Shown in pieces: positions 2,509 to 46,394 of a stretch of DNA of 64,000 nucleotides. Under the pieces are notes generated by a model. That model was not told the DNA's origin. It saw nothing but the letters and a program-made list of their open reading frames with translations, and ran no database searches. The stretch lies in sequence record OZ195934.1, one strand, 5' to 3'. Position numbers and translations under genes: made by a program. Positions within the stretch are counted from its first letter, which is position 1; the number at the start of each line of letters is the position of its first letter.

Positions 2509-2582
2509 CGGAATTATTCCGTCTCATCTTAGTAGTATTAGTGACTTTAGTGATATTAGAGTAATTAGGGGTATTAGTTTAG
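2509..2582. repeat. Palindrome plus six 9-bp TTAG-N5 direct repeats (copy 1)
   Basis: CGGAA-TTA-TTCCG TCTCATC, then TTAG at 2529, 2538, 2547, 2556, 2565, 2574. Confidence 0.9.
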
Positions 2583-2606
2583 AACCACCGCGAATCGTCG
2601 TATAAT
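2577..2606 (+). promoter_or_regulatory. Class B promoter
   Basis: GTTTAGA-17-TATAAT upstream of glutaredoxin. Confidence 0.7.
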
Positions 2607-2624
2607 ACACGTCGAGGTGATGAA

Positions 2625-2867
2625 ATGATAACAATCTACACAATTCCTAACTGTGACGGTTGCCGACATGCAATCGCACTCTGTAAGTTCAAGAAAATCC
2701 CTTTCGAAGAAATCTCGCTTGATTCTGAAGCTAAAATAGCTGCACTCCATAAACGTCTCGGTGGTAATCGTAACATTCGAGTACCGTTAGCTGTTGACTC
2801 TGACGACACGTATATCGGTCACTTACCAGAGCTTAAACAGTACGTTGATAGCAAGCTGTATAAATAG
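2625..2867 (+). CDS. Glutaredoxin (NrdC/NrdH-like)
   Basis: 80 aa, IYTIPNCDGC (CxxC), VP motif, YIG. Confidence 0.85.
   Translation: MITIYTIPNCDGCRHAIALCKFKKIPFEEISLDSEAKIAALHKRLGGNRNIRVPLAVDSDDTYIGHLPELKQYVDSKLYK
2859..2866 (+). promoter_or_regulatory. T4 late promoter
   Basis: Exact TATAAATA upstream of gene 24. Confidence 0.85.
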
Positions 2868-2924
2868 AAGAAACACGCAAATACTCTCCGCTGAAATGCG
2901 GCAATAAATTAAAGGAACGAACAA

Positions 2925-3824
2925 ATGACTGTATCTATCGGTAACGGTTTACCAGACATTGTTACAGTTCAGAAACGACTATATCCGCTTATCTTTACGG
3001 AAATTGTGTCTGAACAACCAACAAAACAGCCAATCGCGACTGCGTACGGCTTTAAAGCTATCAAAGACACTGACGATTCAAGTGGCTGGGGGCAGTGGAA
3101 ATTCTCGCTTGACCGTTGGTCTGCGACTGCCGAAGCAACAAAGCTAAAAACTGATATCTCTCTTGAAGCTATTCAAGACATGGAAGCACTTGGGCTCGGC
3201 ACTGACTTAATCGTTGACTCACTAGCTGATCAAGCGGCAGATGACATCAACACGAATATCATCACTGCACTGAACGCGATTTCAACACTTGGTACTGCGA
3301 TTGACGTTAGCTCAATCACTGGCAAATTCAACAAAGGCCGTGAGTTGTATGCTCTTGCACACGTCGAAGCTTCTAAACTTGAAAAAGAGTCTGGTTGTCA
3401 GGGTTCGTACATCGTAGCAGGCAGCGAGACATTTGGTCTAATCGTTGGTTCTGGTATGGCAAAACGCATTGGTGAATCGAACGTTTATAAATTAGACTCT
3501 GGTCTTAAACTTGTCCATGACAAGTACGCAACGACTGAATACTTCACAGTTGGCGTTAAGAAAGAAATGTCTGATTTCGAAATCTCAAGTCTGATCTTCA
3601 GTCCGTACAATTTCGATGGCGAAACTGGTGGCGGTATTGCTTATCAGCACGAAGGGCAAGACCCTAAGACATTCAACCCAATCTTTGCGATTATCGCACG
3701 ATACGCACTGACAGTTGCACCGCTTGAATCTGATCAAACGGGCGCTAGTGATATCGATTGGGACGATCTTGGTGACAAGGCTAACAGTTCTAAGCTATCA
3801 GCAACATTTGCCGTAACGCTATAG
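2925..3824 (+). CDS. 24: Capsid vertex protein gp24
   Basis: IFTEIVSEQPTKQPIATAYG, KLKTDISLEAIQD, SLIFSPY, IIARYAL: gp23/gp24 family, 299 aa, late promoter. Confidence 0.8.
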   Translation: MTVSIGNGLPDIVTVQKRLYPLIFTEIVSEQPTKQPIATAYGFKAIKDTDDSSGWGQWKFSLDRWSATAEATKLKTDISLEAIQDMEALGLGTDLIVDSLADQAADDINTNIITALNAISTLGTAIDVSSITGKFNKGRELYALAHVEASKLEKESGCQGSYIVAGSETFGLIVGSGMAKRIGESNVYKLDSGLKLVHDKYATTEYFTVGVKKEMSDFEISSLIFSPYNFDGETGGGIAYQHEGQDPKTFNPIFAIIARYALTVAPLESDQTGASDIDWDDLGDKANSSKLSATFAVTL

Positions 3825-3832
3825 GGTGACAC

Positions 3833-4354
3833 ATGAAAACACATTATGTAGATAATAAAGCTCTATACGCATCGATTTGCGAATGGAAAGAAGAAATGAA
3901 GAACGCTGAAGAAGGCGTTTTCGTGCCAGTCCCTGATTTCGTGGCAATTAGTATCATGAAAATCAGCGAGAACTTGACTCGTCGTTACAACTTTAGCAAT
4001 TACACGCAGCCGTGGAAAGAAGAAATGGTTGGTGATGCGATTGAGCATTGCTTACGCTACGTGAAGAACTTCGACACTGAGCGATTCAAAAACCCACACG
4101 CGTATATCACTCGTATCTGTTTCAATGCATTCGTGCAGCGTATTAAGAAAGAACGCCAAGATACAGCGATTAAATATAAAGTATTCTTGTCAGATTCGTC
4201 AAACTACACCGTTGAGGGTGAAGACGTTGATTTCGACTTCATGCAGCAAATGCTAGAACGCGTGAACTCATTCGACGAATCTCGCAAATCAAACAAATCT
4301 GAATCTGCCCCTAGCAAGAAAGACGATTCGAACTTACAAAAATTTTACGATTAA
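3833..4354 (+). CDS. 55: Late-transcription sigma factor gp55
   Basis: HYVDNKALY, NFSNYT, WKEEMVGDAIE, NPHAYITRICFNAFVQRIKKE. Confidence 0.95.
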   Translation: MKTHYVDNKALYASICEWKEEMKNAEEGVFVPVPDFVAISIMKISENLTRRYNFSNYTQPWKEEMVGDAIEHCLRYVKNFDTERFKNPHAYITRICFNAFVQRIKKERQDTAIKYKVFLSDSSNYTVEGEDVDFDFMQQMLERVNSFDESRKSNKSESAPSKKDDSNLQKFYD

Positions 4355-4363
4355 GGAATTAAC

Positions 4364-5800
4364 ATGTTAGGTACCTTTGACTCATTTCTGAGTGAAAATC
4401 GCCGTCAAACTCAGGGTGGTAAAATCTACCCTAAGTTTGGTCAAGTATTTGTTGAGCTAGGCACAGCTTCTACCGACTTCAGCAAAGAAAAAGGCGTTGA
4501 AACAACTATCGGTATGATGGAAAAAGCGAATGAGCTTAAATCTATCATGCAATCTAAACTATTCGAAGACAGCAACGTTGATCACACTAAATTCGACATG
4601 AATCTAAGTGAAAACGTTTCAGTTATCAACTTGCTAATGGAAGAAGAATTCCTAGCATGTAAGCCGACTGAACTTGCGCAACTAAAGTCGATGACCACTG
4701 TGTCTGAAGCTCGTATGCCAAGTCTTGTCGTGAAAGGCGGTGAACTTACGACTATCGTTAGCGAAGCAACTAAGCTTGGTTACAAAAAGTCTGATATTCA
4801 CGTGATCTTCCCGATGGCTGAAATGAAAATCGAACTTGCTGACAGCGACAAGCTAGTGGTTGAAGCACTATCGTTTGATGGACGTACAGCTACTGAAATT
4901 CTGGCAATGGGTTCTCGCATTCAACTTGGCGACGTTTACGTAGTGAGCGAGTCCGTTGAGTCGAACGCTGACGTGCTAGGTCTTGAAGAGATTCGCATCA
5001 ATCGCATGACGCTTGGCGCTCTTAACCGTCACGTTATGAACTGCTTTGTTGTTAAAGAAGCGGCTGAAACGTCATACGCGCACGCTGCGGTTAAAGAAAT
5101 CACTGATCGCCCTGCGCTATCAGGCTTCAAAGCATACGATTTGAAACCAAACGTGACTATGCTTGAACATGCACAAAACGCATTCTCAAAAGACATTGCT
5201 AAAGCTCCGCTTTCTGCAACTGCATGGGAAAAGCTTGTTGATGTGAAAGAAGTGTATTTCGACAATGGTTGGAAACTGAAGCACAACAACACAAGTCTTG
5301 TTCTAACAAACGCTGAAAACGCTATGCGTCATGGTCGTGTTTGTGAAGAATATCGTGTTGAACTGTCTGAAGCAGGTTATCCGCTTCTTGATATGATCGC
5401 GATGATGGAACGCAACGAAGAAATTCGTTGGGACTGTGCTTCGTTTGCTAAACACATGATGAAATTCGACGGTGCTATCACCCCAGAACGTCAATCTGTG
5501 ACAGCATTTACGACTGAATCATCTTCTAATCGCGTATTCCACCCGCATGTGATGTCTGACCTACGTCCAGTTACTGAAGCGGCAGACGACGTTGACAGCT
5601 TGATTCGTGCTATCGCGAATGATCAGTTCAGTTCATTCAAGATCAGTCAAGCATTCTCTGAGCAGATGCTAGATCAAGAAACGCTTTACTCTATGATGGA
5701 ATCAATCGTTTCTGAAGGTATCGACGTTGACGCTGATGGTGATTTGATTACTTTCAAAGTTAATGCGACTCAGTACCACATTCAACTAGACATTAAGTAG
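4364..5800 (+). CDS. Hypothetical 478-aa protein, likely head-internal; degenerate P-loop-like N-domain
   Basis: Starts MLGTFDSFLSE; several (V/L)xE-A/S sites; see findings. Confidence 0.85.
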   Translation: MLGTFDSFLSENRRQTQGGKIYPKFGQVFVELGTASTDFSKEKGVETTIGMMEKANELKSIMQSKLFEDSNVDHTKFDMNLSENVSVINLLMEEEFLACKPTELAQLKSMTTVSEARMPSLVVKGGELTTIVSEATKLGYKKSDIHVIFPMAEMKIELADSDKLVVEALSFDGRTATEILAMGSRIQLGDVYVVSESVESNADVLGLEEIRINRMTLGALNRHVMNCFVVKEAAETSYAHAAVKEITDRPALSGFKAYDLKPNVTMLEHAQNAFSKDIAKAPLSATAWEKLVDVKEVYFDNGWKLKHNNTSLVLTNAENAMRHGRVCEEYRVELSEAGYPLLDMIAMMERNEEIRWDCASFAKHMMKFDGAITPERQSVTAFTTESSSNRVFHPHVMSDLRPVTEAADDVDSLIRAIANDQFSSFKISQAFSEQMLDQETLYSMMESIVSEGIDVDADGDLITFKVNATQYHIQLDIK

Positions 5801-5806
5801 GGTCAA

Positions 5807-6457
5807 ATGGCTAAATCATTAAACGATTTTCTGACTGAAGTTCAGAAATATAGCTCGGCAGCTACATCTATTCGCGGTAAAGAAGTTGCCGCGTTGGTTA
5901 AACTGTTCAAAGCGGGCATGTTTGTACCGGGTGGCACTGCGCTAGATTACGGTGCGGGTAAGTACGGTCGTAATGCTGAATACTTACGTGGCGAGGGTGT
6001 TCGCACTTACGCATACGACAAGTTCAACGGTACATCGGCAGACGGTTGGGTTGACGTGAGTCTAACAATCCCAGCGGGTCAAATGTTCGATACGTCGTTC
6101 ACGTCGTACGTTCTGAACGTAGTTCCACAAGAAGTCGAAGCTGAAATCATTCGCGAGATTGAATCACTTACGACTGGTAAAGTGTTCCACATTACACGTG
6201 GTTCTGACATCACTCAAACGGTATTCAACGTTATCAGTGGTAAGTCTAAGAACGCAGTGATGATGGAATTCCTTGAAACTGAGCAACCAGATTTGTACGC
6301 TCAAGTTCAAGCAGGTGAAAACTTGAAAGCAGTAGCTAAAGAGATCGCGACTCGCGGTGTCGTTACAGCTAAAGACAGTTTCCAACGCATTCCTGACCTT
6401 TCTCAGTACGGTTACAAACGTTCTGGTTCTGGTGCATCGATGGTGTGGACAAAATAA
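5807..6457 (+). CDS. Class I SAM-dependent methyltransferase
   Basis: ALDYGAGKYGRN (motif I), AYD, FDTSFTSYVLNVV; N-terminus MAKSLNDFLTE. Confidence 0.8.
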   Translation: MAKSLNDFLTEVQKYSSAATSIRGKEVAALVKLFKAGMFVPGGTALDYGAGKYGRNAEYLRGEGVRTYAYDKFNGTSADGWVDVSLTIPAGQMFDTSFTSYVLNVVPQEVEAEIIREIESLTTGKVFHITRGSDITQTVFNVISGKSKNAVMMEFLETEQPDLYAQVQAGENLKAVAKEIATRGVVTAKDSFQRIPDLSQYGYKRSGSGASMVWTK

Positions 6458-6474
6458 TTTCGATTATTTCAATA

Positions 6475-6528
6475 AAAGGGTTGCTTCGGCAACCCTTTTT
6501 GCGTATTATAGCTCTATCGAAACGAAAC
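6475..6528 (+). promoter_or_regulatory. Fused terminator / early promoter cassette (PeSL-like)
   Basis: AAAAGGGTTG-CTTCGG-CAACCCTTTTT hairpin with TTGCTT(6481)-17-TATTAT and ATCGAAACGAAAC. Confidence 0.85.
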
Positions 6529-6532
6529 GACT

Positions 6533-6562
6533 GTTTAATACGTCATCAATCTGTTTTATACT
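6533..6562 (+). promoter_or_regulatory. Class B promoter
   Basis: GTTTAAT-17-TATACT in tandem with the class A promoter. Confidence 0.7.
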
Positions 6563-6588
6563 ATGAATCTACTTGAGAGAACAATATT

Positions 6589-7035
6589 ATGATCTATATT
6601 CAAACTAGCAACATCCTATCTGACGACACTCTTGGCTTTGCGCTTGGTGGTGCCCCTCGTCTCGATACTTTGCCAGAAAAAGAACGCAATAATGTTCTTC
6701 TCAAAGCACTCGAAATCAAACTATATGAACGTCTGCCGTCAACTGCTGTATTCGATCATCTACTTCAAAACTCTATCCCGTTCATCGCGATTCTGAGCGA
6801 TATCGAAGAAATTGCTATGCAGCAATCGATTTGGTTCGAAGCAATTTCGAAGAACAAAGGTATCGATATCATGTACACTGCGATGTCTGACGTTGAACAC
6901 AGCGAAGACACGATGCTAATTGCTGAAGATCGCGACGCTCTAATTCGTCAAGGTCAAGCAGGTGGTCGTATTCTACCATTTAGCACAGAAACGCAGATGC
7001 CATTCATCATCGAGACGCTTAACTTACCTCAATAA
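6589..7035 (+). CDS. Hypothetical protein
   Basis: 148 aa ORF with GAGAG RBS. Confidence 0.8.
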   Translation: MIYIQTSNILSDDTLGFALGGAPRLDTLPEKERNNVLLKALEIKLYERLPSTAVFDHLLQNSIPFIAILSDIEEIAMQQSIWFEAISKNKGIDIMYTAMSDVEHSEDTMLIAEDRDALIRQGQAGGRILPFSTETQMPFIIETLNLPQ

Positions 7036-7044
7036 GGAATCATA

Positions 7045-7419
7045 ATGCAAGAACAGACACCATTAGCTCAAGACACTGACATCGGCGAAGCAGTCGCTGA
7101 CCCTGAAGTTCTTGAGTATCTTGAAAAGCTAAAGCAGCATCGCCAAGAAACTATCGAACGCGAAGCTAATCGTCGCATCAAGAAAAACAAGCGTGAGATT
7201 AAACGTCTGCACAAACACGCTCAGGAATGTCTAATCAATGACAATAAAGACGGTTACATTTATGCTATCGGTAAGCTGCGTAAACTAACTGGTCATGTTG
7301 TCGGTGATGATGTGCTTGAAACTCTATGGCAAACAAGTCGTGAGCAAGTACAAAAGATCGCTGCTTCATTCGCTGAAGCTCAAGCAAACTTGCCTGAAGG
7401 GCAAAATTTCAGTCAATAG
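7045..7419 (+). CDS. a-gt.4: T4 a-gt.4-like conserved protein
   Basis: EANRRIKKNKREIKRLHKHA...YIYAIGKLR. Confidence 0.75.
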   Translation: MQEQTPLAQDTDIGEAVADPEVLEYLEKLKQHRQETIEREANRRIKKNKREIKRLHKHAQECLINDNKDGYIYAIGKLRKLTGHVVGDDVLETLWQTSREQVQKIAASFAEAQANLPEGQNFSQ

Positions 7420-7426
7420 GTGATAC

Positions 7427-7882
7427 ATGAACATCAAGTCAGGCGCTGGTTATCCAGCCAGTGCTTTGTCTAACTTCGCACCTCATTCATTCACACTGGA
7501 TGGGGTTGAATGCGCGTCTATGGAAGGGTTTCTTCAGTCTTTGAAGTTCAAAAACCCTGATATGCAACGTGAAGTCTGCAAATTAGTAGGCAAAGTTGCT
7601 AAAGCACGCGGTGCAAAGAAGAACTGGCAACGCACTCAAACTCTATATTGGCAAGGTGTGCCGATTCAACGTGCTTCTGATGGCTATCAGACGTTGCTTG
7701 ATGATGCATACGCTGCATTAGCTCAGAACGAGAAATTCAAGCGTGCATTACTCGCGACTGGTAAAGCTACTCTTACTCACTCTATCGGGCGTAAGAAGCA
7801 ATCTGAGACGGTTCTAACGGTACAAGAGTTCTGTAGTCGTCTAACTGACATTCGCGACTTTCTTCAAGGGGTAGAATCATGA
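7427..7882 (+). CDS. 30.3: NADAR-family ADP-ribosylhydrolase (T4 gp30.3-like)
   Basis: YPASALSNFAPHSF, SMEGFLQSLKF, FKRALLATG, LTHSIG. Confidence 0.85.
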   Translation: MNIKSGAGYPASALSNFAPHSFTLDGVECASMEGFLQSLKFKNPDMQREVCKLVGKVAKARGAKKNWQRTQTLYWQGVPIQRASDGYQTLLDDAYAALAQNEKFKRALLATGKATLTHSIGRKKQSETVLTVQEFCSRLTDIRDFLQGVES

Positions 7883-8385
7883 GAATGACAAATCTTCGAT
7901 TAGCCTTGAATTCAGTGTTTAAATCGCGTAAAGAAAAGCCTATTCTATATCTCGACATGGACAATGTACTCGTTGATTTTCAGAGTGGTATTGATTCTCT
8001 CTCAATGTGGGAAAAGCATCAATATGATGGCAAATACGACGAATGTCCGGGAATCTTCGCGAACATGAAACCGTATGCAGGTGCTGTTGCAGCGTTTCTA
8101 GCACTGTCTGATCACTTTGACGTGTATATTCTGTCAACTGCTCCGTGGGAAAACCCGGGTGCATGGCAAGATAAGCGCAATTGGGTTCAGCGTTATCTAG
8201 GTGAACGCGCTCATAAGCGTTTGATTCTGTCGCATAACAAAAATCTGAACTTCGGTCATTATCTCGTCGATGATCGCACCGCGAATGGTGCAGGCGAGTT
8301 CATGGGCGAACATATTCACTTTGGCACTGACAAATACCCTGATTGGTCGTCTGTTGTGTCATATCTTTTGAAGGAAATAGAATGA
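7879..8385 (+). CDS. 5'(3')-deoxyribonucleotidase (HAD)
   Basis: LYLDMDNVLVDF, ILSTAPW, LVDDR. Confidence 0.9.
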   Translation: MRMTNLRLALNSVFKSRKEKPILYLDMDNVLVDFQSGIDSLSMWEKHQYDGKYDECPGIFANMKPYAGAVAAFLALSDHFDVYILSTAPWENPGAWQDKRNWVQRYLGERAHKRLILSHNKNLNFGHYLVDDRTANGAGEFMGEHIHFGTDKYPDWSSVVSYLLKEIE

Positions 8386-9422
8386 AAGTAGCACTTTTAG
8401 GCGATTTGCATATCGGGGTGCGCGATGATGACTTGTGGATTCAAGATTATCAACGTAAATTCTTTGACTTTATGTTTGCTGAACTTGAGCATCGCGGTGT
8501 TAAAGATCTCGTCCAACTAGGTGACTGGTTTGACGTGCGTCGTGGCGCGACTCAAGAAACATTGATGTTTCAACGAACGTATCTTAACGACATGTTAGCA
8601 GGCATCAATACGCACGTACTTGTTGGTAACCATGACATGCACTTACGTGAGCGCATCGTACCGAACACGCCATACGAAGTATTGAGCATCGTTCCTGACG
8701 TTACGATTTACGAACACCCGCGAACCGTTGTGTTTGGTGATGTTGCAATCGACATTATCCCGTGGATTTGTAAAGAGAATGAAGCTGAAATCGCTGAGTT
8801 CATCGAGAACACGACAAGCGAATACTGCGTTGGTCACTTTGAGCTGAACGGCTTTGAGTTCCACAAGGGTCAGAAAGCAACGGGCTGTCTTGATTCGAGC
8901 TTCTTGAAAGGTTACAAGCAAGTTTGGTCTGGTCACTTTCACACGCAATCTGAAGCGGGTAATATCAAGTATCTTGGTACACCGTACACGCTGACGCTTG
9001 CAGATGCTGATGATAAGCGCGGATTCTTCTTGTTTGACACAGAAACGCACGAAATGGAGTTCATTGAGAACCCAGATTGTTGGCACACTAAGCTGTACTA
9101 CGACGCGAACACGTTCGACACGAAGACGATTGACAGCTACGCGAACAAGAACGTTAAGATCATCGTTGAACGTCGCTCTAGTGACTCACGTGACTTGTCG
9201 TTTGATGTAGTCGAAGATCGTATCGCGAACATTGCTCATGCTTGTGACACGCTCGATGAGCTTGAAATCAAGAAAGACATGGCAGAAGACTTCAAAGACA
9301 TCAAAGATATCGACGATTATGTTGGCGATTACGCTGACACGCTTGAAGAATCGACTGAAGTCAAGAACAAGGTCAAGGCGATCTTTAGTTCTCTGCGTGC
9401 TGAAGCGATGGAGAATGCTTGA
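8382..9422 (+). CDS. 47: Recombination endonuclease subunit gp47 (Mre11-like)
   Basis: GDLHIG, QLGDWFD, GNHD, GHFE, SGHFH, GTPY; true start ATG 8382. Confidence 0.95.
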   Translation: MKVALLGDLHIGVRDDDLWIQDYQRKFFDFMFAELEHRGVKDLVQLGDWFDVRRGATQETLMFQRTYLNDMLAGINTHVLVGNHDMHLRERIVPNTPYEVLSIVPDVTIYEHPRTVVFGDVAIDIIPWICKENEAEIAEFIENTTSEYCVGHFELNGFEFHKGQKATGCLDSSFLKGYKQVWSGHFHTQSEAGNIKYLGTPYTLTLADADDKRGFFLFDTETHEMEFIENPDCWHTKLYYDANTFDTKTIDSYANKNVKIIVERRSSDSRDLSFDVVEDRIANIAHACDTLDELEIKKDMAEDFKDIKDIDDYVGDYADTLEESTEVKNKVKAIFSSLRAEAMENA

Positions 9423-9649
9423 TGTCTGACTTAAAACCATGTAAAGTATGTGGCTGCAAGCCGTATGTGCATGAGACGAATATCCATGCACATGGCACAG
9501 CATTTCGCGGGTGGGTTGTTGAGTGTACTTTTGACGAAGAAGACTATCGCAATCCACCAAAAGTACCGCCGTATGTCGACCATACGTTGGAGATTTACGG
9601 TGCGACTCAAGAAGAAGCAACCGAACGTTGGGAGCAGCTAAATGATTAA
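9422..9649 (+). CDS. Small Cys-motif hypothetical (Lar-like LKPCxxCG start)
   Basis: MSDLKPCKVCGCKP; ATG overlaps the gp47 stop. Confidence 0.7.
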   Translation: MSDLKPCKVCGCKPYVHETNIHAHGTAFRGWVVECTFDEEDYRNPPKVPPYVDHTLEIYGATQEEATERWEQLND

Positions 9650-11879
9650 ATTCAAAAGCGTCACTTACAGCAACATTATGTCAGTCGGTAATACGCCGAT
9701 TACAGTTGAGTTGGACAAGTTCAACAAGACACTGATCACTGGTACTAATGGTGCGGGTAAATCGACGTACATCGAAGCAGTTTGTTTTGCGTTATACGGC
9801 AAGCCGTTTCGTAACATCAAAAAGACTCAGATTGTCAATGCAGTCAACAAGAAAAAGCTTCTTGTTGAGATTGAGTTTCAAGATAAAAAGCACTTGTACA
9901 AAATCGTGCGTGGCATCAAGCCGAACAAATTCGAAATCTACAAAGATGGCGATTTGATTCCGCAAGAAGCTGCGGTCGCTGATTACCAAGATATGCTTGA
10001 AAAGAACATCTTGCAGATGAGTTTGAGCACATTCAAACAAATCGCTGTGCTAGGTACGGCTGGTTTCACGCCATTCATGCTTTTACCCGCTGCGAAGCGT
10101 CGTGAAATCGTGGAAGACTTGCTTGATATCGGTATCTTCAGTGACATGGCATCGTTGAACAAAGTCGCGTTGAAAGACTTGAACACGAAGATCACTGACA
10201 TCGAAGCAGATATCGAACGTCGCATGGGCGAACTTCGTCTACACGTCGAATTCCAGAAAGAGCAGAAAGACAATCGCGATGGTGATTTGGCTCAACTGGT
10301 TAGTCGTAAAGCTGAAGCTGAGACGCAAATTGCTCCACTAGCGTCTGCTATGTCTCATCTTGAAGACCAGATCAGCGGTGATAGCACGATTCTTCGTGAC
10401 TTGAAAACCAAGCTTGCTGAAGCTCTTGAAACTGCGAGTGCAGAACAAGCGAAAGAACTGTCCGAACTTGATGCTGAACATCGTTCGAATAAGGCTGAGA
10501 TCCATGCGGGCTTTGAAAAAGAAGTGTCTGAGCTGAAAGCCAAGCATACGTCTGAGCAAGATGCAACTGATGCACTACACGAATCTGACTTACTTGAGTT
10601 TGACCGTGTTCAAGCGGAAGCATTGTCTACATTTGACGGTGAAACTGAAAAGAACACACCAGAAGACGCAGACACTGATCAGATTGCGGCTGACACATCA
10701 ATGATGTTCAGCAACAAAAAAGAGATCGATCAGCTCAAGACGAACAAAAAATTCTTCGAAGAGAACGGTGACTGCGAGTGTTCAACTTGTAAGCAAACAA
10801 TCTCGTCTGATTTCGCTCAGAATGTCATCGACATGGCAGATCAGCGCATTGAAACGCTGACAGCCGAGACGAAAGCACTTGTAGACGCGATTCGCACCGC
10901 TCAAGACAAAGCTAAAGCACGTAAAGCGTACTTAACGGATCGTTCGACTGAACGTTCGGGTTTAGAAGCAACGCAGCGTACAGAGCGTTCTACGTTCGTT
11001 AACGAACAGTCAACTGAACGTCAGACAATCGCACGTAAGCAGCAAGAAGAAATGAACACCTTTGTTGGTGATGTGCAGAACCCTGCAATTCGTCTTCTGA
11101 ATGAGACACAATCGAAAGCGCGTGCTGACATTGTAGCTCAACATGCTGAGTTCAACGCGAATATCACTAAAGGTGATGCGTCTGCGCGTGAAGAACTGAC
11201 CGCGAACATCGGTAAAGACAAAGCTGAACTTGCTACTATTGTCGCAAAAGAAGAGGCTTTGAACAAAGCAATTGCTACTATTGTCGCAGATATTGCAGAT
11301 GTTGAGGCGAAAGCAGCAACTGAAGACCGTTCTGAGCTTATCAAAGAGCAAACGTCTGAGATTAAGCGTGTTAAAGCGGGTCTAGCTGTAGATCTTCAGA
11401 CTAAACACTGTCGCGGTATCGTGGCAACGTTGTTGAAAGACGATGGCGTGAAGTCGATGATTGTTAAACAGTACATCCCGATGATTAACAAGTACATCAA
11501 CGAATACTTGAAGACTATGAACGCGAACTACAACTTCGTTCTAGACGAAGAGTTCAACGAGACTATCAAATCTCGTGGTCGTGATGACTTCAGTTACACG
11601 TCGTTTTCTCAAGGTGAGCGATGCCGTATTGACTTAGCGTTACTATTCGCGTTCCGTGACTTGGTAAGCGCACGTACGGGTTCAATGACCAACTTGCTTG
11701 TACTCGATGAGGTGTTCGATTCTGCTGCTGATACAGATGGCGTAGATTCAATTAACCAGATTCTTAGCACAATCAAAGACAACGTGTTTATTATCTCACA
11801 CAGTGAGAAGCATGAGCAAAGCATGTTCGATAAGCACATTCGATTCACCAAGAAAGGCAACTTCACTAAGGAAGTCTAA
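9642..11879 (+). CDS. 46: Recombination endonuclease subunit gp46 (Rad50-like)
   Basis: GTNGAGKS, CSTC hook, FSQGE signature, LLVLDEVFD. Confidence 0.95.
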   Translation: MIKFKSVTYSNIMSVGNTPITVELDKFNKTLITGTNGAGKSTYIEAVCFALYGKPFRNIKKTQIVNAVNKKKLLVEIEFQDKKHLYKIVRGIKPNKFEIYKDGDLIPQEAAVADYQDMLEKNILQMSLSTFKQIAVLGTAGFTPFMLLPAAKRREIVEDLLDIGIFSDMASLNKVALKDLNTKITDIEADIERRMGELRLHVEFQKEQKDNRDGDLAQLVSRKAEAETQIAPLASAMSHLEDQISGDSTILRDLKTKLAEALETASAEQAKELSELDAEHRSNKAEIHAGFEKEVSELKAKHTSEQDATDALHESDLLEFDRVQAEALSTFDGETEKNTPEDADTDQIAADTSMMFSNKKEIDQLKTNKKFFEENGDCECSTCKQTISSDFAQNVIDMADQRIETLTAETKALVDAIRTAQDKAKARKAYLTDRSTERSGLEATQRTERSTFVNEQSTERQTIARKQQEEMNTFVGDVQNPAIRLLNETQSKARADIVAQHAEFNANITKGDASAREELTANIGKDKAELATIVAKEEALNKAIATIVADIADVEAKAATEDRSELIKEQTSEIKRVKAGLAVDLQTKHCRGIVATLLKDDGVKSMIVKQYIPMINKYINEYLKTMNANYNFVLDEEFNETIKSRGRDDFSYTSFSQGERCRIDLALLFAFRDLVSARTGSMTNLLVLDEVFDSAADTDGVDSINQILSTIKDNVFIISHSEKHEQSMFDKHIRFTKKGNFTKEV

Positions 11880-12352
11880 TGAAACTGATACCGGTTCAAA
11901 TCGACTATCAAGACGATATTTACAAAATGGCGAAATATCTCTTGGCTAACGATGGTCATCCGGATTCACTTGAGACGAAGATCGGGCGCTTTATGCTCGG
12001 TCGAGCGACTGGTCACACTTCAGCAATGCAAGCAACTGCTAGTCGCTTGCGTGCTGAGGGCTATCGCGTCACTGAAGTGTATCTGAATCAGCATATGATG
12101 ACGGATTCTATTCGAAATTCGCATCACCCACACCCTGATATGTGTATGACATATGGTCATTTAATTGACCGTGGCTTTTCGGCTTCGGCTTTACGTAGTC
12201 GATGCTCACATGATATTTCCGATATCATCTTGTTTGACACATATTCATTTGCAGAACAACGCATTCCGAATCTGTCGGCAAAGGTGGAAGAATTCATGTA
12301 CATCTTGCACAGACATTATCATAAAAGAACTGCGTTTTTCTTCATTCAGTAA
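11879..12352 (+). CDS. Hypothetical protein
   Basis: 157 aa, translationally coupled to gp46. Confidence 0.7.
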   Translation: MKLIPVQIDYQDDIYKMAKYLLANDGHPDSLETKIGRFMLGRATGHTSAMQATASRLRAEGYRVTEVYLNQHMMTDSIRNSHHPHPDMCMTYGHLIDRGFSASALRSRCSHDISDIILFDTYSFAEQRIPNLSAKVEEFMYILHRHYHKRTAFFFIQ

Positions 12353-12382
12353 GTTTAGACACTTAAATAGCTGTGTTATTAT
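12353..12382 (+). promoter_or_regulatory. Class B promoter
   Basis: GTTTAGA-17-TATTAT; -10 lies in the loop of a TAGCTGTG/CGCAGCTA inverted repeat. Confidence 0.7.
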
Positions 12383-12407
12383 AGCGCAGCTACTGAGGAA
12401 ACAACGC

Positions 12408-12620
12408 ATGACTACTTTAGATAATCATATTACAACGCCCGACATTAAACATTGGGTGATAATTGATAACTTCCGTGGTGAAGAAAAGATCTTGCCCGAA
12501 GTGCAATTAATCGAAGCTTTCGGCGAAGAACGTTGGCGAAAGATTACGTCTGGTTTAGACGACTATTTCAAAGCATACGAGTATAACTACGAATATACTG
12601 AGCGTGGCTTTAAACTCTAA
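12408..12620 (+). CDS. 45.2: T4 gp45.2-like protein
   Basis: 70 aa from ATG 12408 (GAGG RBS), syntenic position before gene 45. Confidence 0.6.
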   Translation: MTTLDNHITTPDIKHWVIIDNFRGEEKILPEVQLIEAFGEERWRKITSGLDDYFKAYEYNYEYTERGFKL

Positions 12621-12654
12621 TTGAACAAAACATCATACATTTGAAGGTAAAATA

Positions 12655-13320
12655 ATGAAACTTAACAAATCTACAATTGAAGTGCTAAAAAACTTTGCTG
12701 GCATCAACAACGGCATGGTTATCCACGCGGGCACTCGTCTACGTACTCAAGATAACTTGAACAAGCAAATCGCTTATGCAGACATCGAAGACACGTTCCC
12801 TGCTGAATTTGCAGTATACGATCTTGGTGAGTTTCTAAGCGCAATCAACTTGCTTGATAACGCTGAACTTGACTTCCAAGAAAAATACGTTGTCGTTACT
12901 GGCGATGGTGGCACGAAACTGACGTTCCAATATGCAAACGCTGAGTTTGTAACTGAAGCACCAGAGAAAGTGAACTTCCCTGATGATCTTACTGGCGGTG
13001 CTGAGTTTGACCTTAAAGGTGAAGATCTACAGCGCGTTAAGAAAGCATCGGCAACACTTGGTCTGTCTGATATCTGTGTACGCACGACTGCGGGTTCAAC
13101 TGCGGTTACTCTATCTGCGACTGACGCGCAAGGTTCGAGCAAGCACAAATTCGAAATCAACGTTGGTACTGCTGACGAGGCAATCGAATACGAGTTCTTC
13201 TTCAAATCTGAGCGACTAAACATCGTTGACCAAGACTACAAAGTGTCTATTCACCCAGCGGGTATTTCTCGCTTCTTGGGTCTATCGCTTGAATACTTCA
13301 TTGCTACTGAAGCACTGTAA
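12655..13320 (+). CDS. 45: Sliding clamp gp45
   Basis: MKLNKSTIEVLKNFAGIN, FAVYDLGEFL. Confidence 0.95.
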   Translation: MKLNKSTIEVLKNFAGINNGMVIHAGTRLRTQDNLNKQIAYADIEDTFPAEFAVYDLGEFLSAINLLDNAELDFQEKYVVVTGDGGTKLTFQYANAEFVTEAPEKVNFPDDLTGGAEFDLKGEDLQRVKKASATLGLSDICVRTTAGSTAVTLSATDAQGSSKHKFEINVGTADEAIEYEFFFKSERLNIVDQDYKVSIHPAGISRFLGLSLEYFIATEAL

Positions 13321-13335
13321 TTTAAGTTAAGTGTC

Positions 13336-13357
13336 GGGGCTTAATCGCCCCTTTTTT
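13336..13357 (+). terminator. Rho-independent terminator
   Basis: GGGGC-TTAATC-GCCCC + T6. Confidence 0.85.
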
Positions 13358-13383
13358 GAAAATTTTATTATGGGAAACAAGCA

Positions 13384-14334
13384 ATGAATTTTGATGCAAA
13401 AGAGCTACTTTGGGAACAAAAATACCGTCCACAAACAATCAAAGAGTGTGTTTTACCAGAACGCGTTCGTGAACACTTCACGACAATGATTGAGAAGAAC
13501 GAACTTCCGAACATGCTTCTAGCGAGTTCTTCACCGGGTACTGGTAAGACTACAGTAGCGCGTGCATTACTTGCCGATTTGGGTTACGATGTTCTATTCG
13601 TTAACGCGTCGTCAAGTCGTGGTATTGGTCTAGTTCAGACTGATTTACCGGCGTTCTGTTCAACTGTTTCATTCTCGGGCAAGCCTAAAGCGGTAATTCT
13701 TGATGAGGCAGATAACTTGACTGCTGATGCACAGAAAGCATTACGTGGTTTGATTGAGCAGTTCAGCAAAAACGTACGTTTTGTTCTAACGTGTAACTAC
13801 CCACAGAAAATCATCACACCGATTCGTTCGCGTCTACAGACTTTCGAGTTTGTCTATGACAAGACCGAGCAGCTATCGTGTGTCAAGCAGATGATTATCC
13901 GCTCTATGGGTATTTGTAAAAACGAAGGCATCACTGTAACGAACGCTGCTGTGCTTAAAGAGCTAGTTAAGCGTAACTACCCTGATAACCGTGCAACCGT
14001 CGTAGCGTTGCAGAACTACGCACGTAAAGGTGTGATTGATGAGGGTATCTTGTCTGAAATCACAGCGAACGACGATATTTCAGAAATGATTGCAGCACTG
14101 AAATCGAAAGACTTCAAATCTGTGCGTGGTCTGATTCCGAAATACTCTGGTGACATCGCGGGCTTCTTGCACAATCTTTACAAAGCGGCTTACACTGATC
14201 TTGATGGTAACAGCATTGCGATGTTCATTCAGATTGTCGGTGAAGCGAACAACAACGCGACCACGTGTGTTGATACTGAAATTTTGCTTGCGTACACGCT
14301 TGTGCAAATCATGCTTGAATGTACTTTCGTATAG
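13384..14334 (+). CDS. 44: Clamp loader large subunit gp44
   Basis: LWEQKYRP, SPGTGKTT, ILDEAD, SRL. Confidence 0.95.
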   Translation: MNFDAKELLWEQKYRPQTIKECVLPERVREHFTTMIEKNELPNMLLASSSPGTGKTTVARALLADLGYDVLFVNASSSRGIGLVQTDLPAFCSTVSFSGKPKAVILDEADNLTADAQKALRGLIEQFSKNVRFVLTCNYPQKIITPIRSRLQTFEFVYDKTEQLSCVKQMIIRSMGICKNEGITVTNAAVLKELVKRNYPDNRATVVALQNYARKGVIDEGILSEITANDDISEMIAALKSKDFKSVRGLIPKYSGDIAGFLHNLYKAAYTDLDGNSIAMFIQIVGEANNNATTCVDTEILLAYTLVQIMLECTFV

Positions 14335-14343
14335 GGAATTATC

Positions 14344-14829
14344 ATGGACATCTTTGAACTATTAGCGAAAGGCGAAGAAGCTGAAGCGAAACAAGCCGAA
14401 GATGACGCAGCATACGAAGCAGAAATGAAAGCGGCGAAAGTGAAAAAGCTATCGCCATTTGATTTTCTGAACAGCATTTACATGAAAGAGCGCATCGGTG
14501 ACGATCAGGTATCGCAGTATCAACCATTCATGGTGAATCGCGGTATGTCTAACGGCATCGATACGATTGTACACGCGTATATCATGGATCAATGCGGTAG
14601 TAAGCTACCGAAAGATATGCAGTACGACTACATGTATCACGCAGTTCGTAAAGGCAAGCGTTACAACAAGTGGGCGAAAGAAACGAAGTACGATTCAGTT
14701 GACATGATCATGGAAGTCTATGATTTGAACAAACAGAAAGCAATCGACGTGCTTCATCGACTAACAGAACAAGAACTATTGGATTTGACTGAATGGTTTG
14801 AGTCACGAACCGGGGGCTTAACTCGCTAA
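14344..14829 (+). CDS. 62: Clamp loader small subunit gp62
   Basis: LSPFDFLNSI, YQPFMVNRGMS, KGKRYNKWAK. Confidence 0.9.
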   Translation: MDIFELLAKGEEAEAKQAEDDAAYEAEMKAAKVKKLSPFDFLNSIYMKERIGDDQVSQYQPFMVNRGMSNGIDTIVHAYIMDQCGSKLPKDMQYDYMYHAVRKGKRYNKWAKETKYDSVDMIMEVYDLNKQKAIDVLHRLTEQELLDLTEWFESRTGGLTR

Positions 14830-14835
14830 TAAATA
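14828..14835 (+). promoter_or_regulatory. Possible late promoter for regA
   Basis: AATAAATA 29 nt upstream of the regA ATG. Confidence 0.45.
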
Positions 14836-14863
14836 TGTTTTTATTATGCAGTTGAGACTACAC

Positions 14864-15244
14864 ATGGACATTATTAACAAACTTGAAATCAAATTGCCAG
14901 ATGATGATGCATTCTTGAAGATTCGCGAGACTCTTACAAGAATCGGCATCGCAAACAACAAAACCAACACGCTGTACCAATCGTGTCATATTCTTCAGAA
15001 ACGCGGTGTTTACTATCTCGTACACTTCAAAGAGCTTCTAGCTCTTGACGGTCGATGCGTAGAAATCACGGCTGAAGACATTGAGCGTCGTAATAACATT
15101 GCGAAGCTACTTGAAGACTGGAGCTTGTGCAGCATCGCACATCCCGAGTCTCACGAGTTCACGGGCGACAACAAATTCCGTGTGATCTCGTATCGTGATT
15201 CGAAAAACTGGGAATTGCGTTACAAGTACAAAATCGGAGCGTAA
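14864..15244 (+). CDS. regA: Translational repressor RegA
   Basis: FLKIRETLTRIGIAN, LYQSCHILQKRG, YLVHFKEL. Confidence 0.97.
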   Translation: MDIINKLEIKLPDDDAFLKIRETLTRIGIANNKTNTLYQSCHILQKRGVYYLVHFKELLALDGRCVEITAEDIERRNNIAKLLEDWSLCSIAHPESHEFTGDNKFRVISYRDSKNWELRYKYKIGA

Positions 15245-15245
15245 C

Positions 15246-15296
15246 ATGCGCGAAGAAGATTGGGGTTTAGAGTCTGAAGAAGACTGGTTAATCTAA
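15246..15296 (+). CDS. Putative 16-aa acidic microprotein MREEDWGLESEEDWLI
   Basis: GGAG 6 nt upstream of ATG; fills the gap between regA and a terminator. Confidence 0.45.
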   Translation: MREEDWGLESEEDWLI

Positions 15297-15300
15297 TATA

Positions 15301-15321
15301 GGGGCTACACGCCCCTTTTTT
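15301..15321 (+). terminator. Rho-independent terminator
   Basis: GGGGC-TACAC-GCCCC + T6. Confidence 0.85.
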
Positions 15322-15332
15322 GTGAGGAATAT

Positions 15333-15860: not shown

Positions 15861-15889
15861 TTTAACAGCTAAACAACGCGTGATAGCAT
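15860..15889 (+). promoter_or_regulatory. Class B promoter for gene 43
   Basis: GTTTAAC-17-TAGCAT. Confidence 0.65.
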
Positions 15890-15919
15890 ACATACATCAA
15901 ACACTTGTGAAGGAATAAT

Positions 15920-43888: not shown

Positions 43889-43892
43889 AAAC

Positions 43893-44879: not shown

Positions 44880-44899
44880 CACCCGAGAAAGGGGTTGCC

Positions 44900-45088
44900 T
44901 TGAAAAAGCGTCATATATTTCTATTGACGTGCGTGTGTGGAGCAATAGCATACTTCGCTGTGCTATTCTTCGCGGCATTATTGTACGCAGGTACAATAGA
45001 ATTTGCATTATCATTCGTGGTAATCGTATTCATCGCCTTGCTAAATATAGTAAGAGCTGAAATACAAAATAACGACAAAGCTCCGTAA
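44900..45088 (+). CDS. Small two-TM membrane protein (TTG start)
   Basis: KKRH then two hydrophobic segments; AAGGGG upstream. Confidence 0.6.
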   Translation: MKKRHIFLLTCVCGAIAYFAVLFFAALLYAGTIEFALSFVVIVFIALLNIVRAEIQNNDKAP

Positions 45089-45100
45089 GGGGCTTTTTTT
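45078..45100 (+). terminator. Rho-independent terminator
   Basis: AAAGCTCC-GTAA-GGGGCTTT + T. Confidence 0.8.
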
Positions 45101-45114
45101 ATGCGAGAAGTAAA

Positions 45115-45708
45115 ATGAAAAAATTCAACGAGTTCGCGAAAGAACTGGAAGAAGCAGCAACTGACATCGTGTATCACGGTACGTCACTGAGTCGAGCTAT
45201 TGAAATATTGTCTACTGACAAGTTCAGATTGAGTGATGCTAAAGGCAGTTGGTCAGATGACACAGACACTGAGATCAACCAGAAGCAAGGCAAAGACAAG
45301 CGATACTACTTGTCAACTGCACGTAGTGCAACTAGCCCGTACATCAATGACCTAGACACGATGATTGACTCGACCACGGCTGACGTTCTCTTTGTCATTG
45401 ATGGTCGCAAGATTAGCCACAACCACAGAACGAAAGCAGTTGACTACGGTCGCGGTGAATATGCATCGGACTATGGTAATGAGCTTGAAGATCGCGTGTT
45501 CAGCAAAAAGCCAGTGATTGATAATGCCTCTAAGTACATCAAAGAAGCACACGTATGGAAGAAATTCTCTAGCAGTTCGTCACACGGCGAGTCGATACTA
45601 GAGAAGTTCCTATCTCAAGCAAAGAGAAAAGGGATTCGCGTGTGGGTGTATGATAATCAACGCGATTGGCAGTCTATGAACAAGAAAAGGGCTGTCTTCA
45701 CTCAATAA
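45115..45708 (+). CDS. Putative ADP-ribosyltransferase-fold protein with capsid-targeting-like N-terminus
   Basis: MKKFNEFAKELEEA; VYHGTS; YLSTARS; NELEDRV. Confidence 0.6.
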   Translation: MKKFNEFAKELEEAATDIVYHGTSLSRAIEILSTDKFRLSDAKGSWSDDTDTEINQKQGKDKRYYLSTARSATSPYINDLDTMIDSTTADVLFVIDGRKISHNHRTKAVDYGRGEYASDYGNELEDRVFSKKPVIDNASKYIKEAHVWKKFSSSSSHGESILEKFLSQAKRKGIRVWVYDNQRDWQSMNKKRAVFTQ

Positions 45709-45717
45709 GAGAGCAAC

Positions 45718-46275
45718 ATGGCATTTTTGAATAGAAAAGAATTGGATACAAGTGAGATAACCGAAGCTGATATGCAATACGCGATTGCAGTGCAGAGTGT
45801 ATGGATCAACAAGCGATACACAGCGATGATACCGAACTGTTTCACCACAGTGACACACGACAACGAAGCTGACTTGTATGGCATTCGACCAAGTGGTCTA
45901 TGTGATGAGATTGAAATCAAGGTATCGAAAGCTGATTTCCGTATCGATGAGAAGAAAACAGTCAAAGTATTAGACGAAGCCGCACCAACACGTTGGAATC
46001 GATACACAGACGTTCTCAAACGCACAGCATTGACCGATGGCAACATGAGCAACTACTTCTGGTATGCTTTCCCTAAAGGGCTTGTAGACCACGCAGACGT
46101 TCCAGATTGGGCAGGCATCATTGAAGTAGATGGCTTACTGAATGCTCATGAAGTAAGAATGCCAAAGCGACTGCATGGTAGAAAGCTGTCAATCGAAGAA
46201 CAACTCAAGCAAATCAAGAAGCTTGGTTACCGATTCTGGAATCTAGTCAAGAAGAACAAATCAAAAGCCCCTTAA
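45718..46275 (+). CDS. MmcB-like PD-(D/E)XK nuclease
   Basis: EADLYG...EIEIKVSKADFRID...NYFWYAFP...WAGII. Confidence 0.8.
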   Translation: MAFLNRKELDTSEITEADMQYAIAVQSVWINKRYTAMIPNCFTTVTHDNEADLYGIRPSGLCDEIEIKVSKADFRIDEKKTVKVLDEAAPTRWNRYTDVLKRTALTDGNMSNYFWYAFPKGLVDHADVPDWAGIIEVDGLLNAHEVRMPKRLHGRKLSIEEQLKQIKKLGYRFWNLVKKNKSKAP

Positions 46276-46288
46276 ATGGGGTTTTTTT
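46264..46288 (+). terminator. Rho-independent terminator
   Basis: AAAAGCCCC-TTAAAT-GGGGTTTTTTT. Confidence 0.85.
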
Positions 46289-46320
46289 AGGTCTAGCGTT
46301 AGCGAAAGGAAATGGTGAGC

Positions 46321-46394
46321 CGGAAAAATTCCGTCTCATCTTAGTAGAATTAGTAGTTTTAGTGAAGTTAGTGGTATTAGAGATATTAGAAGTG
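46321..46394. repeat. Palindrome plus six 9-bp TTAG-N5 direct repeats (copy 2)
   Basis: CGGAA-AAA-TTCCG TCTCATC, then TTAG at 46341, 46350, 46359, 46368, 46377, 46386. Confidence 0.9.

Follow-up and report, generated by a model that had tools for sequence, protein, structure and literature searches.

A conserved hairpin-repeat element of KVP40-like vibriophages and Vibrio parahaemolyticus chromosomal islands: a possible start site of phage DNA replication

The two copies of the element in the window

The DNA analyzed here (the window) is a 64,000-nucleotide stretch of sequence record OZ195934.1, which megablast identified as positions 62001-126000 of the Vibrio phage D483 record. D483 is a KVP40-like T4-type phage of the genus Schizotequatrovirus with a genome of 254 kb, and about 50 related records followed it in this search with identities of 76-100%. 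The window carries two intergenic copies of an element of roughly 90 bases (core about 92 bp), in which a hairpin is followed by the linker TCATC and by an array of six 9-nucleotide units starting with TTAG. We tentatively interpret this element as a start site of phage DNA replication.

The signals that make up both copies lie on the plus strand. Upstream of copy 1, the intrinsic terminator of a SprT-like gene occupies positions 2478-2499 (a stem of six pairs at 2478-2493, then a T run). Hairpin and linker follow at 2506-2528; the sequence CGGAA-TTA-TTCCG (2509-2521) can be extended by GAG/CUC pairing with one bulge, and TCATC is found at 2524-2528. The six units of the array span positions 2529-2582 and a sigma-70-type promoter (TTTAGA-17-TATAAT, 2578-2606), the -35 box of which overlaps unit 6, fires away from the array. 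This promoter serves an nrdH-like gene (coding sequence, CDS, 2625-2867) followed by gene 24 and gene 55, and its geometry is repeated in the phages KVP40, VH7D and VS1 and in a metagenomic orthologue (L235). Copy 1 lacks the upstream GAGCGAAGCG box that is described below.

Copy 2 is located downstream of the rnlB cluster and upstream of the dam/rIIA cluster (locus c2). It is preceded by a weak terminator-like hairpin (CCCC-TTAAAT-GGGG followed by T7, 46268-46288) that overlaps the upstream stop codon. This structure was read by eye, is under the five-pair threshold of our terminator scanner and is absent at the same locus in KVP40, VH7D and VS1. The 5' part of the copy (46295-46340) comprises a variant of the upstream box (AGCGTTAGCG, 46295-46304), an AATGG motif, the hairpin CGGAA-AAA-TTCCG (46321-46333), which has outer GAG/CTC pairs too, and TCATC (46336-46340). 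The six-unit array extends from 46341 to 46394. A sigma-70-type promoter (TTGACA-18-TAATAT with a TG, 46414-46443) starts 19 nucleotides past the array and fires away from it, and the next CDS begins at 46483. Mini-CDSs are annotated on the minus strand on both sides of this copy (46247-46339, 46402-46515).

A sequence-only reading of the window had described these two copies (2509-2582 and 46321-46394) with the same architecture, including a promoter after each array, and our analysis confirmed this description. What it called a twice-repeated element is an effect of the window, since the D483 genome holds six copies. A terminator plus AGGT in front of the hairpin, also part of that description, is found at some copies and not at all of them. 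When the window was searched for four in-phase TTAG units, only the two arrays were matched (expectation 0.00 in the shuffled window), and the chance expectation for the hairpin followed by TCTCATC was 0.15 in the window.

Copy number, loci, and conservation

A search of related phages, as suggested on the basis of the window, was carried out by BLAST with an 81-nucleotide query. The element was present in 51 of 51 Schizotequatrovirus records at 294 places, which corresponds to about six copies per complete genome. For the copy census, the genomes of D483, KVP40 and VS1 were assembled and VH7D was covered via its IMG/VR loci. In each of these phages, six copies occupy the same six loci: upstream of nrdH-24-55 (window copy 1), downstream of the rnlB cluster (c2, window copy 2), upstream of the lipoprotein gene KVP40.0252 (locus lipo), upstream of wac, between gene 3 and gene 1, and upstream of uvsY. 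All copies are co-directional with local transcription. Metagenomic orthologues were found for the nrdH copy (L235) and for the wac copy (L220). The arrays show a mean column identity of 81% with invariant TTAG, whereas the flanking genes share about 70-77% of their nucleotides.

No copy was detected in any representative bacterial genome scanned, and thus there is no host counterpart; plasmid searches did not yield a copy either. Loose scans for TTAG periods covered IMG/VR, metagenomes and 185k bacterial genomes. Their output consisted mainly of unrelated tandem and coding repeats, from which true homologues were filtered by hairpin and C content. Taken together, these data indicate that the element is a selected cis-acting site, which is present genus-wide and far beyond chance.

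The phage D482 is a close relative of D483 and both are 99.9% identical over the first 12 kb of the window, yet their arrays have diverged at the uvsY (L307) and lipoprotein (L309) loci. The uvsY copy of D482 has five units, and TTCG units are present. This divergence suggests that the two copies have either recombined locally with another lineage or come under relaxed constraint.

Anatomy of hairpin, linker, and array

We aligned 29 copies of the element without gaps (alignment A1). From this alignment it can be seen that the parts follow each other in a constant order: an optional GAGCGAAGCG box, the hairpin, the invariant TCATC and the 54-nucleotide array. The optional box is located 15-20 nucleotides upstream and merges into the end of the preceding open reading frame (ORF) at some loci.

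The hairpin stem has six pairs and is extendable to nine. At one stem position, 13 copies have G·U and 11 have G-C; U·G occurs once at another position, and two adjacent pairs are swapped from GG/CC to CC/GG in three copies. An A·C state, which folding of the opposite strand would imply, is absent from every stem pair of the 29 copies. The hairpin therefore belongs to the sense strand, either as RNA or as single-stranded DNA. In the sequence-only reading it was described as a palindrome, but with its G·U pairs and the GG/CC to CC/GG compensation it behaves as a strand-specific hairpin and not like a symmetric site for a protein.

For the 3' arm, two alleles (CCGTCTC and CCGCATC) were observed, and their distribution over the loci differs between lineages, so that the copies exchange sequence. 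The hairpin alleles (A1 columns 28-29 and 16-17/25-26; CGGAA/TTCCG vs. CCCAA/TTGGG) are shuffled over the six loci in D483, KVP40, VS1 and VH7D. The alignment pattern indicates gene conversion between copies that are separated by 25-60 kb.

In alignment A1, TCATC does not vary, and neither does TTAG in units 1-5. Unit 6 is degenerate where it overlaps a -35 box or a start codon, and TTTG, TTCG or TTAT occur in some nrdH, uvsY and lipoprotein copies. The consensus of the units reads, in order, TTAGTAGTA, TTAGTRGTT, TTAGTGAAG, TTAGAGATA and TTAGNAGTA, followed by the variable sixth unit. Since each unit has its own consensus, all 54 nucleotides are conserved, beyond the period alone. The five bases after each TTAG had been described as divergent spacers between which only period and number are kept by selection; selection of the element is borne out, but the spacers are not free. 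Similarly, six units are the rule and not an exact number, as can be seen from the degenerate sixth units, the five-unit uvsY copy of D482 and a seven-unit island copy.

The near-absence of C from the top strand, which was noticed in the window, holds for the 29 aligned copies. C was found at 14 of 870 variable array positions (1.6%) in the sense strand, vs. 23% for G. The array has a period of three, with T at the first position (78%), A at the second (70%) and G or T at the third. The in-frame trinucleotides are TAG in 44% and TAT in 17% of the cases and carry a central A in 71%; each array is made up of about 18 TAG-like trinucleotides. RNAalifold did not predict any conserved structure except the hairpin. 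Compared with mononucleotide shuffles, the arrays fold slightly better (mean z = -2.5), because UUAG self-pairs through wobble pairs, and selection for an unstructured array is not supported.

Coding potential and known RNA families

Tiny CDSs for hypothetical proteins are annotated over five of the six copies, and over or beside every copy. They are located at positions 2504-2605 of the window (VPHD483_0097) and at 22523-22684, 158972-159061, 221722-221841 and 247673-247846 of the D483 record. A coding peptide was rejected for several reasons. Both stop-free frames have in-array stops in 8 of the 29 copies and start codons are usually wanting; in many copies a stop codon lies immediately upstream and there is no start codon. 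Moreover, the third base of the TTA codon is invariant, and the hairpin variant would alter three residues. Thus, the mini-CDSs are probably spurious and result from the stop-free frames of a 9-nucleotide repeat.

Rfam searches of the whole window did not yield a match at the gathering score; the best hit near copy 1 reached 18 bits vs. a gathering score of 34. The element is not mentioned in the paper on PeSL cassettes (PMC4122927), in a 2025 Schizotequatrovirus paper or in the T4 reviews, and neither the element nor the island family introduced below was found to be described in the accessible literature.

Genomic context, spacing, and duplex stability

At five of the six loci, the order is terminator, element and outward sigma-70-type promoter. 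The terminators at nrdH, uvsY and wac were called by the scanner; those at c2 and between gene 3 and gene 1 were read by eye (hairpin plus T run), where the scanner called none. If placements ahead of the terminator, between terminator and promoter, and behind the promoter are considered equally likely, five out of five elements between terminator and promoter correspond to P≈0.004 (own calculation). With a terminator before it and a promoter after it, the element lies outside the primary transcription units. The -35 box overlaps unit 6 at nrdH and uvsY and starts 10 nucleotides past the array at wac and 19-22 nucleotides past it at c2 and gene 3/gene 1. A fixed distance or helical phase between the array and the downstream -35 box was tried and is not conserved (49, 52, 63, 73 and 75 bp from the array start). 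Scans of the phage loci did not detect any upstream promoter reading into the element.

The lipo locus has neither a terminator nor a promoter in our scans. Here, the Shine-Dalgarno (SD) sequence GGAG lies in unit 5 and the start codon inside unit 6, and this arrangement was found in four lineages. At c2 of KVP40, VH7D and VS1, the element adjoins the upstream stop codon.

On the circular map the six positions are over-dispersed, with gaps of 26-63 kb (P = 0.009 for the minimal gap, P = 0.0065 for the variance; one set of orthologous positions). When nearest-neighbor free energies were calculated for 54-bp windows across the D483 genome, the six arrays ranked among the least stable 0.04-0.22% (0.15% for copy 1, 0.22% for copy 2). 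Their free energies vary between -56 and -59 kcal/mol vs. a genome mean of -71.7 ± 4.0.

The flanking genes differ at every locus, and no Rep/Par-like or initiator gene flanks any copy. Pfam and PHROG scans of the flanking phage genes and of the island ORFs did not suggest a candidate binding protein. Elsewhere in the genome, the gene at 205198-206631 of the D483 record (L126 29198-30631, minus strand; KVP40.0300) is annotated as RNA-binding protein and carries the domains DUF2828 and DUF7788.

Chromosomal islands of Vibrio parahaemolyticus

In four metagenome contigs, the element is found with 90-97% identity between flanks that are unrelated to the phages. These contigs belong to a family of chromosomal islands of V. 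parahaemolyticus, and the element is all that the phages and this family have in common at the nucleotide level. The island variants examined (L301, positions 1-18004; L302, L304, L305, L310, L312 and L313) originate from GCA_031147305.1, GCA_039558125.1, GCA_036926695.1, GCA_015780515.1 and metagenomes, and were supplemented by the fragments L170 and L187.

The islands are about 15 kb long and most are inserted in an M32 carboxypeptidase gene beside a large serine recombinase. Their core includes a homologue of Schizotequatrovirus gp45, the sliding clamp, of 227-347 amino acids (some with a 135-residue insert), which shares 55-58% identity over the N-terminal 110 residues and 41-42% over the C-terminal 100 residues. 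A helix-turn-helix protein, a small resolvase and an ORF of 334-345 residues (putative Rep) are also encoded; the latter is preceded by iterons that co-vary with it. Variable slots hold defense cargo such as Thoeris and restriction-modification systems. T4-type late-promoter boxes (TATAAATA) are conserved before the island operons. Two further ORFs (L301 3275-3838 and 14132-14365) are weakly similar to the uncharacterized phage ORFs KVP40.0372 (29% identity) and KVP40.0297 (29-30% identity), with E-values of 4e-4 to 1e-6. From their gene content, the islands look like a phage-inducible island or satellite that may be aimed at KVP40-like phages.

Each variant carries one element in a non-coding region of 1.3 kb, co-oriented with the iteron/ORF module. 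AAAAA-TTCCGCATCATC and the array are invariant, with seven units in one variant. In contrast, the 5' arm of the hairpin is different or disrupted in four variants, and the GAGCGAAGCG box is missing in one. Since the islands hold the array and let the hairpin decay, the array is the part they need. A candidate promoter upstream of the element in some variants (M1, TTGAAG-N16-TATACA) was rejected by the scanner and is not relied on. Within the same region (L301 6800-7320; alignment A2, columns 375-870), a 5' box, GAGCGAAGCGA, is exactly complemented by TCGCTTCGCTC and GACGCTTCGCGTC about 400 nucleotides downstream. These complements precede a T-rich run, and minimum free energy folds pair them with GAGCGAAGCGA. 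According to these folds, the region may form a structured non-coding RNA of about 480 nucleotides that displays the array.

A possible role in the start of replication

Several features of the element fit a DNA site better: it is placed between terminator and promoter, its copies are evenly spaced and extremely unstable as duplexes, one of them is located at uvsY, the array shows the TAG pattern, and the element was captured by islands without an upstream gene reading in. On the other hand, a single-stranded working form, for which RNA is the obvious candidate, is suggested by the G·U pairs and compensatory changes of the hairpin, the avoidance of C, the orientation along transcription and the ribosome site at the lipo locus. 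A replication-initiation or unwinding site that acts through its top strand once opened reconciles most facts of both sets. For this reason, we tentatively rank first a strand-polar function in the initiation of phage DNA replication, with the element as unwinding or loading site.

From anatomy, conservation, polarity, spacing, helical instability and island capture, we infer the following mechanism. The 54-bp array, which is easily melted and carries about 18 TAG-like trinucleotides, would act as unwinding and loading pad. When opened, its C-free top strand would be bound, as a single strand, by an oligomeric factor of phage or host origin, and an initiator, a helicase loader with its helicase, a recombinase or an R-loop-forming RNA primer are candidates for this function. 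The GC hairpin on the same strand might mark or stabilize the boundary, the upstream terminator would shield most copies from incoming transcription, and the outward promoter 0-22 bp downstream could aid opening via negative supercoiling. The fixed polarity would send the first fork along the direction of transcription. Six evenly spaced copies would serve the 250-kb genome, just as T4 is served by its five or more origins. The islands, with their mimic of the phage clamp and their use of late promoters of the T4 type, may carry one copy to be replicated or switched on by the infecting phage.

This interpretation has parallels in T4. The unwinding element of T4 oriF and oriG is roughly 50 bp long, T4 origins act as recombination hot spots, and according to Kreuzer and Alberts plasmids carrying T4 origins are reportedly replicated and packaged by T4. 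The shuffled alleles among our copies fit origins that are recombination hot spots, as in T4. The uvsY gene, where one copy of the element is located, is the site of T4 oriF (PMC3016281). A further parallel is the DnaA-trio (3'-GAT-5'), which bacterial initiators read on single-stranded DNA beside a GC-rich spacer (PMC8287927).

A number of observations weigh against a replication start site. There is no promoter directly upstream at the phage loci, so that the element is not an origin of the oriF/oriG type (promoter plus unwinding element), and no initiator gene is linked to any copy. T4 origins do not share a motif (PMC3016281). The lipo copy, which has no terminator or promoter and carries an SD sequence and a start codon, is certainly transcribed, and so is c2 in KVP40, VH7D and VS1, where it abuts the stop codon. 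The islands have iterons and a putative Rep gene of their own, and the hairpin is disrupted in half of the island variants. The eroded uvsY and lipo copies of D482 imply that not every copy is indispensable. Finally, low duplex stability follows in part from any A/U-rich RNA element, and the spacing statistic is derived from a single set of positions.

If the replication start site is extended to its consequences, the element would be the consensus initiation or single-strand loading site of Schizotequatroviruses, read on one strand in the manner of the bacterial DnaA-trios, and the first shared origin motif of any T4-type phage. It would have been pirated by phage-inducible islands with a clamp mimic and late promoters, which would be the first satellites or parasites of a T4-like virulent phage. 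We consider this broader proposal possible and somewhat more speculative. As for the candidate origin proposed in the sequence-only reading, a role in the start of replication is retained in first place; the classical palindrome-plus-iteron origin is not, since the 9-nucleotide contiguous units are out of helical phase and consist of TAG-like trinucleotides.

Alternative explanations

A serious rival, which we judge possible but doubtful, is an RNA element. According to this explanation, read-through or polycistronic transcripts with a 5' hairpin and a C-free (UUAGNNNNN)6 track would be coated by a multimeric or cooperative protein, for example a RegA- or gp32-like phage protein, a ring protein or the host proteins Hfq, S1 or RNase E. 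The lipo copy would be a translational operator that occludes the ribosome site, the other copies would serve as titration, processing or stabilizing sites and the island copy as decoy or infection sensor. The six phage copies, like that of the islands, all point along the direction of transcription, and the hairpin is kept on the sense strand by G·U/G-C alternation, one U·G pair and double compensation. The RNase E consensus is RN/WUU, and the unit junctions GU/AUU match it. The avoidance of C in the sense strand resembles the C-free RegA ligands obtained by SELEX (PMC3014915). The most direct support comes from the lipo locus, where the SD sequence (GGAG, unit 5) and the start codon (unit 6) are part of the array in four lineages with no promoter in between. 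This geometry matches the T4 gene 32 operator, in which a structured nucleator is followed by UUAA(A) repeats up to the ribosome-binding site (PMC3014915). A gene-32-like geometry is seen at the lipo locus only, and a genome-wide scan of D483 showed no array at gene 32. However, five of the six loci have the element downstream of a terminator and upstream of the promoter, in the part of the gap where transcription is least likely. An RNA element does not explain why the copies are evenly spaced and extremely unstable as duplexes, the islands keep the array and let the hairpin decay, and the arrays are not less structured than shuffles. Neither an Rfam match nor a cognate protein was identified. 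The repeated-UAG ligand for a ring protein, which had been proposed as an alternative from the window, survives as part of this rival; the spacing typical of TRAP or HutP ligands is not found because the trinucleotides are contiguous.

It appears unlikely that the element is a double-stranded site upstream of promoters, at which the array would bind a phage transcription factor that switches the adjacent sigma-70-type promoters, like middle-mode control, and through which the islands would sense infection. The -35 box starts 0-22 bp past the array at five of six loci, and a fixed orientation to the promoter would account for the co-orientation. The downstream genes (uvsY, gene 1, nrdH-24-55, dam/rIIA cluster) are of the kind that T4 middle promoters serve. 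But the distance to the -35 box varies over two helical turns, the lipo locus has no promoter, and the post-array motif of the islands (TATACA as -10 box) fails the promoter scan. Moreover, exclusion of C from one strand and covariation of a hairpin are unexpected for a double-stranded site, and the 9-bp period is out of helical phase.

Entry of the packaging machinery or of the clamp is quite improbable. Here, the element would recruit the terminase or load the gp45 clamp that activates late transcription, and the islands would have copied it for packaging or late transcription. T4 couples its packaging to gp45 and gp55, and satellites typically copy the packaging site of their helper (P4 cos, cos-PICIs). 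To our knowledge, T4-type packaging needs no specific site, and this speaks against such a function, as does the lack of a copy near the terminase genes. The single-strand features are not explained, and there is no evidence for a nicking enzyme or for terminase binding. In its favor, gp45 is listed as late activator (PMC2988020), and the polarity of the element matches the strand-polar loading sites of the T4 clamp. With an iteron/Rep module of their own, a gp45 homologue and TATAAATA boxes already present, a packaging or loading signal may be what the islands lack.

Slightly less probable still is a selfish or structural repeat of the REP/BIME or PeSL kind, which would spread and become homogenized by gene conversion and whose effects would at most be generic, for example protection of mRNA 3' ends or shuffling by recombination. 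Indeed, different lineages have the hairpin alleles shuffled over the loci, the end of a coding region can take up the upstream box, copies are eroded in D482, and the gaps that hold the element are of the PeSL type, with a stem-loop on one side and an early promoter on the other (PMC4122927). A selfish repeat is difficult to reconcile with exactly six syntenic copies in all lineages without gains, with arrays that are better conserved (81%) than the flanking genes (about 70-77%) and evenly spaced, and with the independent retention of the element by every island variant.

Least probable of all is the main proposal of the sequence-only reading, a classical double-stranded iteron origin or plasmid-like centromere with a dedicated Rep- or ParB-type protein: a conserved multi-copy array of direct repeats beside a palindrome would suit it, but the 9-bp units are contiguous and out of helical phase, no Rep or Par (partition) gene is adjacent at any locus, the palindrome tolerates compensatory changes that a sequence-reading dimer would not, one strand excludes C, and the T4 oriE repeats are unrelated.

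Implications

The element is probably an important control site that has not been described before, with a replication start site as the most likely function. How T4-type phages choose their replication start is poorly understood, and a compact, conserved element in six copies provides a testable handle. If the RNA platform is true, the array would be a new repeat-RNA ligand in a phage group without a known post-transcriptional regulator of such type. Its presence in the islands is informative under either of these two explanations and makes the element a molecular link between phage and island. Islands with a phage-derived clamp gene, late-promoter boxes and defense cargo point to an unrecognized parasite or defense system directed against broad-host-range vibriophages, which are under consideration for biocontrol in aquaculture.

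Comparison with known systems

T4 oriF and oriG share several properties with the element: an easily unwound part of about 50 bp, dispersed copies (five or more in T4, six here), a copy at uvsY, polar (at first unidirectional) action and an association with transcription signals. The T4 promoter is situated upstream and directs transcription into the unwinding element, and the R-loop, a persistent RNA-DNA hybrid, serves as primer. In contrast, a terminator is located upstream here and the promoter points outward, so that an unwinding element of about 50 bp is present as in oriF/oriG and the immediate upstream promoter is not. The T4 origins have no shared motif, whereas the copies of the element share a strict motif and a hairpin.

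With the basal unwinding system of bacterial oriC, the element has in common strand-specific TAG-like trinucleotides with a conserved central A, a position directly 3' of a GC-rich part and low duplex stability. A DnaA-trio comprises at least three consecutive trinucleotides with a central A by a GC-rich spacer (PMC8287927), and the array, which follows the GC hairpin and TCATC, has this organization. It differs from oriC in having 18 trinucleotides with a 9-nucleotide super-period vs. a minimum of three, in being phage-borne in six copies and in lacking a DnaA box. Within about 16 bp, the best similarity to TTATCCACA was 6/9 (7/9 in one copy), and the compensated hairpin variant does not retain it.

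Evenly spaced short direct repeats, the iterons of oriE, have also been proposed to mark a T4-type origin and were cited as a precedent in the sequence-only reading. This precedent does not hold, since the oriE repeats have 12-nucleotide cores and a 24-bp period and lie inside gene 5, antisense to repEA/repEB, whereas the element is intergenic with a period of nine; we found no similarity in sequence or position. In T4 (79.4-79.6 kb; L314 1403-1570), the repeats read GTTGAAGGTAAT-N12 and fall on a coding repeat of gp5; this coincidence may be the reason that their part in origin function stayed unclear. This role is undefined in the literature (PMC3016281). Iteron plasmids carry repeats of about 17-22 bp in helical phase and an adjacent Rep or ParB gene, and neither feature was found. 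The same applies to a centromere-like site, as had been suggested for the window, since no partition gene lies beside any copy and the contiguous 9-nucleotide units are out of helical phase.

Among RNA ligands, the operators of T4 gene 32 and RegA resemble the lipo copy, with a structured 5' nucleator followed by unstructured, C-poor A/U-rich repeats that reach the SD sequence and AUG. In contrast to these operators, only one of six copies overlaps a ribosome site, the controlled gene is not that of the binder, and the repeat is UUAG, six times at 9 nucleotides, vs. UUAA(A). TRAP and HutP ligands also present repeated UAG in a C-poor single strand, and the count of six suggests a hexamer. Their spacers measure 2-3 nucleotides (TRAP) and 4 nucleotides (HutP), whereas the TAG-like trinucleotides of the element are contiguous with a 9-nucleotide super-period. 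A leader or ribosome-site position is found for one of the six copies, the others lying outside leaders, and Rfam gave no match.

PeSL cassettes occupy the same kind of intergenic setting, with recombination or gene conversion among copies, and this context is found at five of six loci. In the element, a hairpin-array module is inserted between stem-loop and promoter, and this module is outside the PeSL consensus of nt-1 and KVP40 (PMC4122927). The element is outside every defined class of origin and represents, as a kind, another form of cis-acting repeat array.

The island copies can be compared with helper sites borne by satellites (P4 cos, cos-PICIs, PLE-type), since an island specialized on one phage group carries a near-identical cis element of the phage. 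Unlike in these satellites, the helper would be a virulent phage of the T4 type, the island additionally codes for a homologue of the clamp, and the site may be an origin, a packaging signal or an RNA. This link between phage and island is the most unexpected part of our findings.

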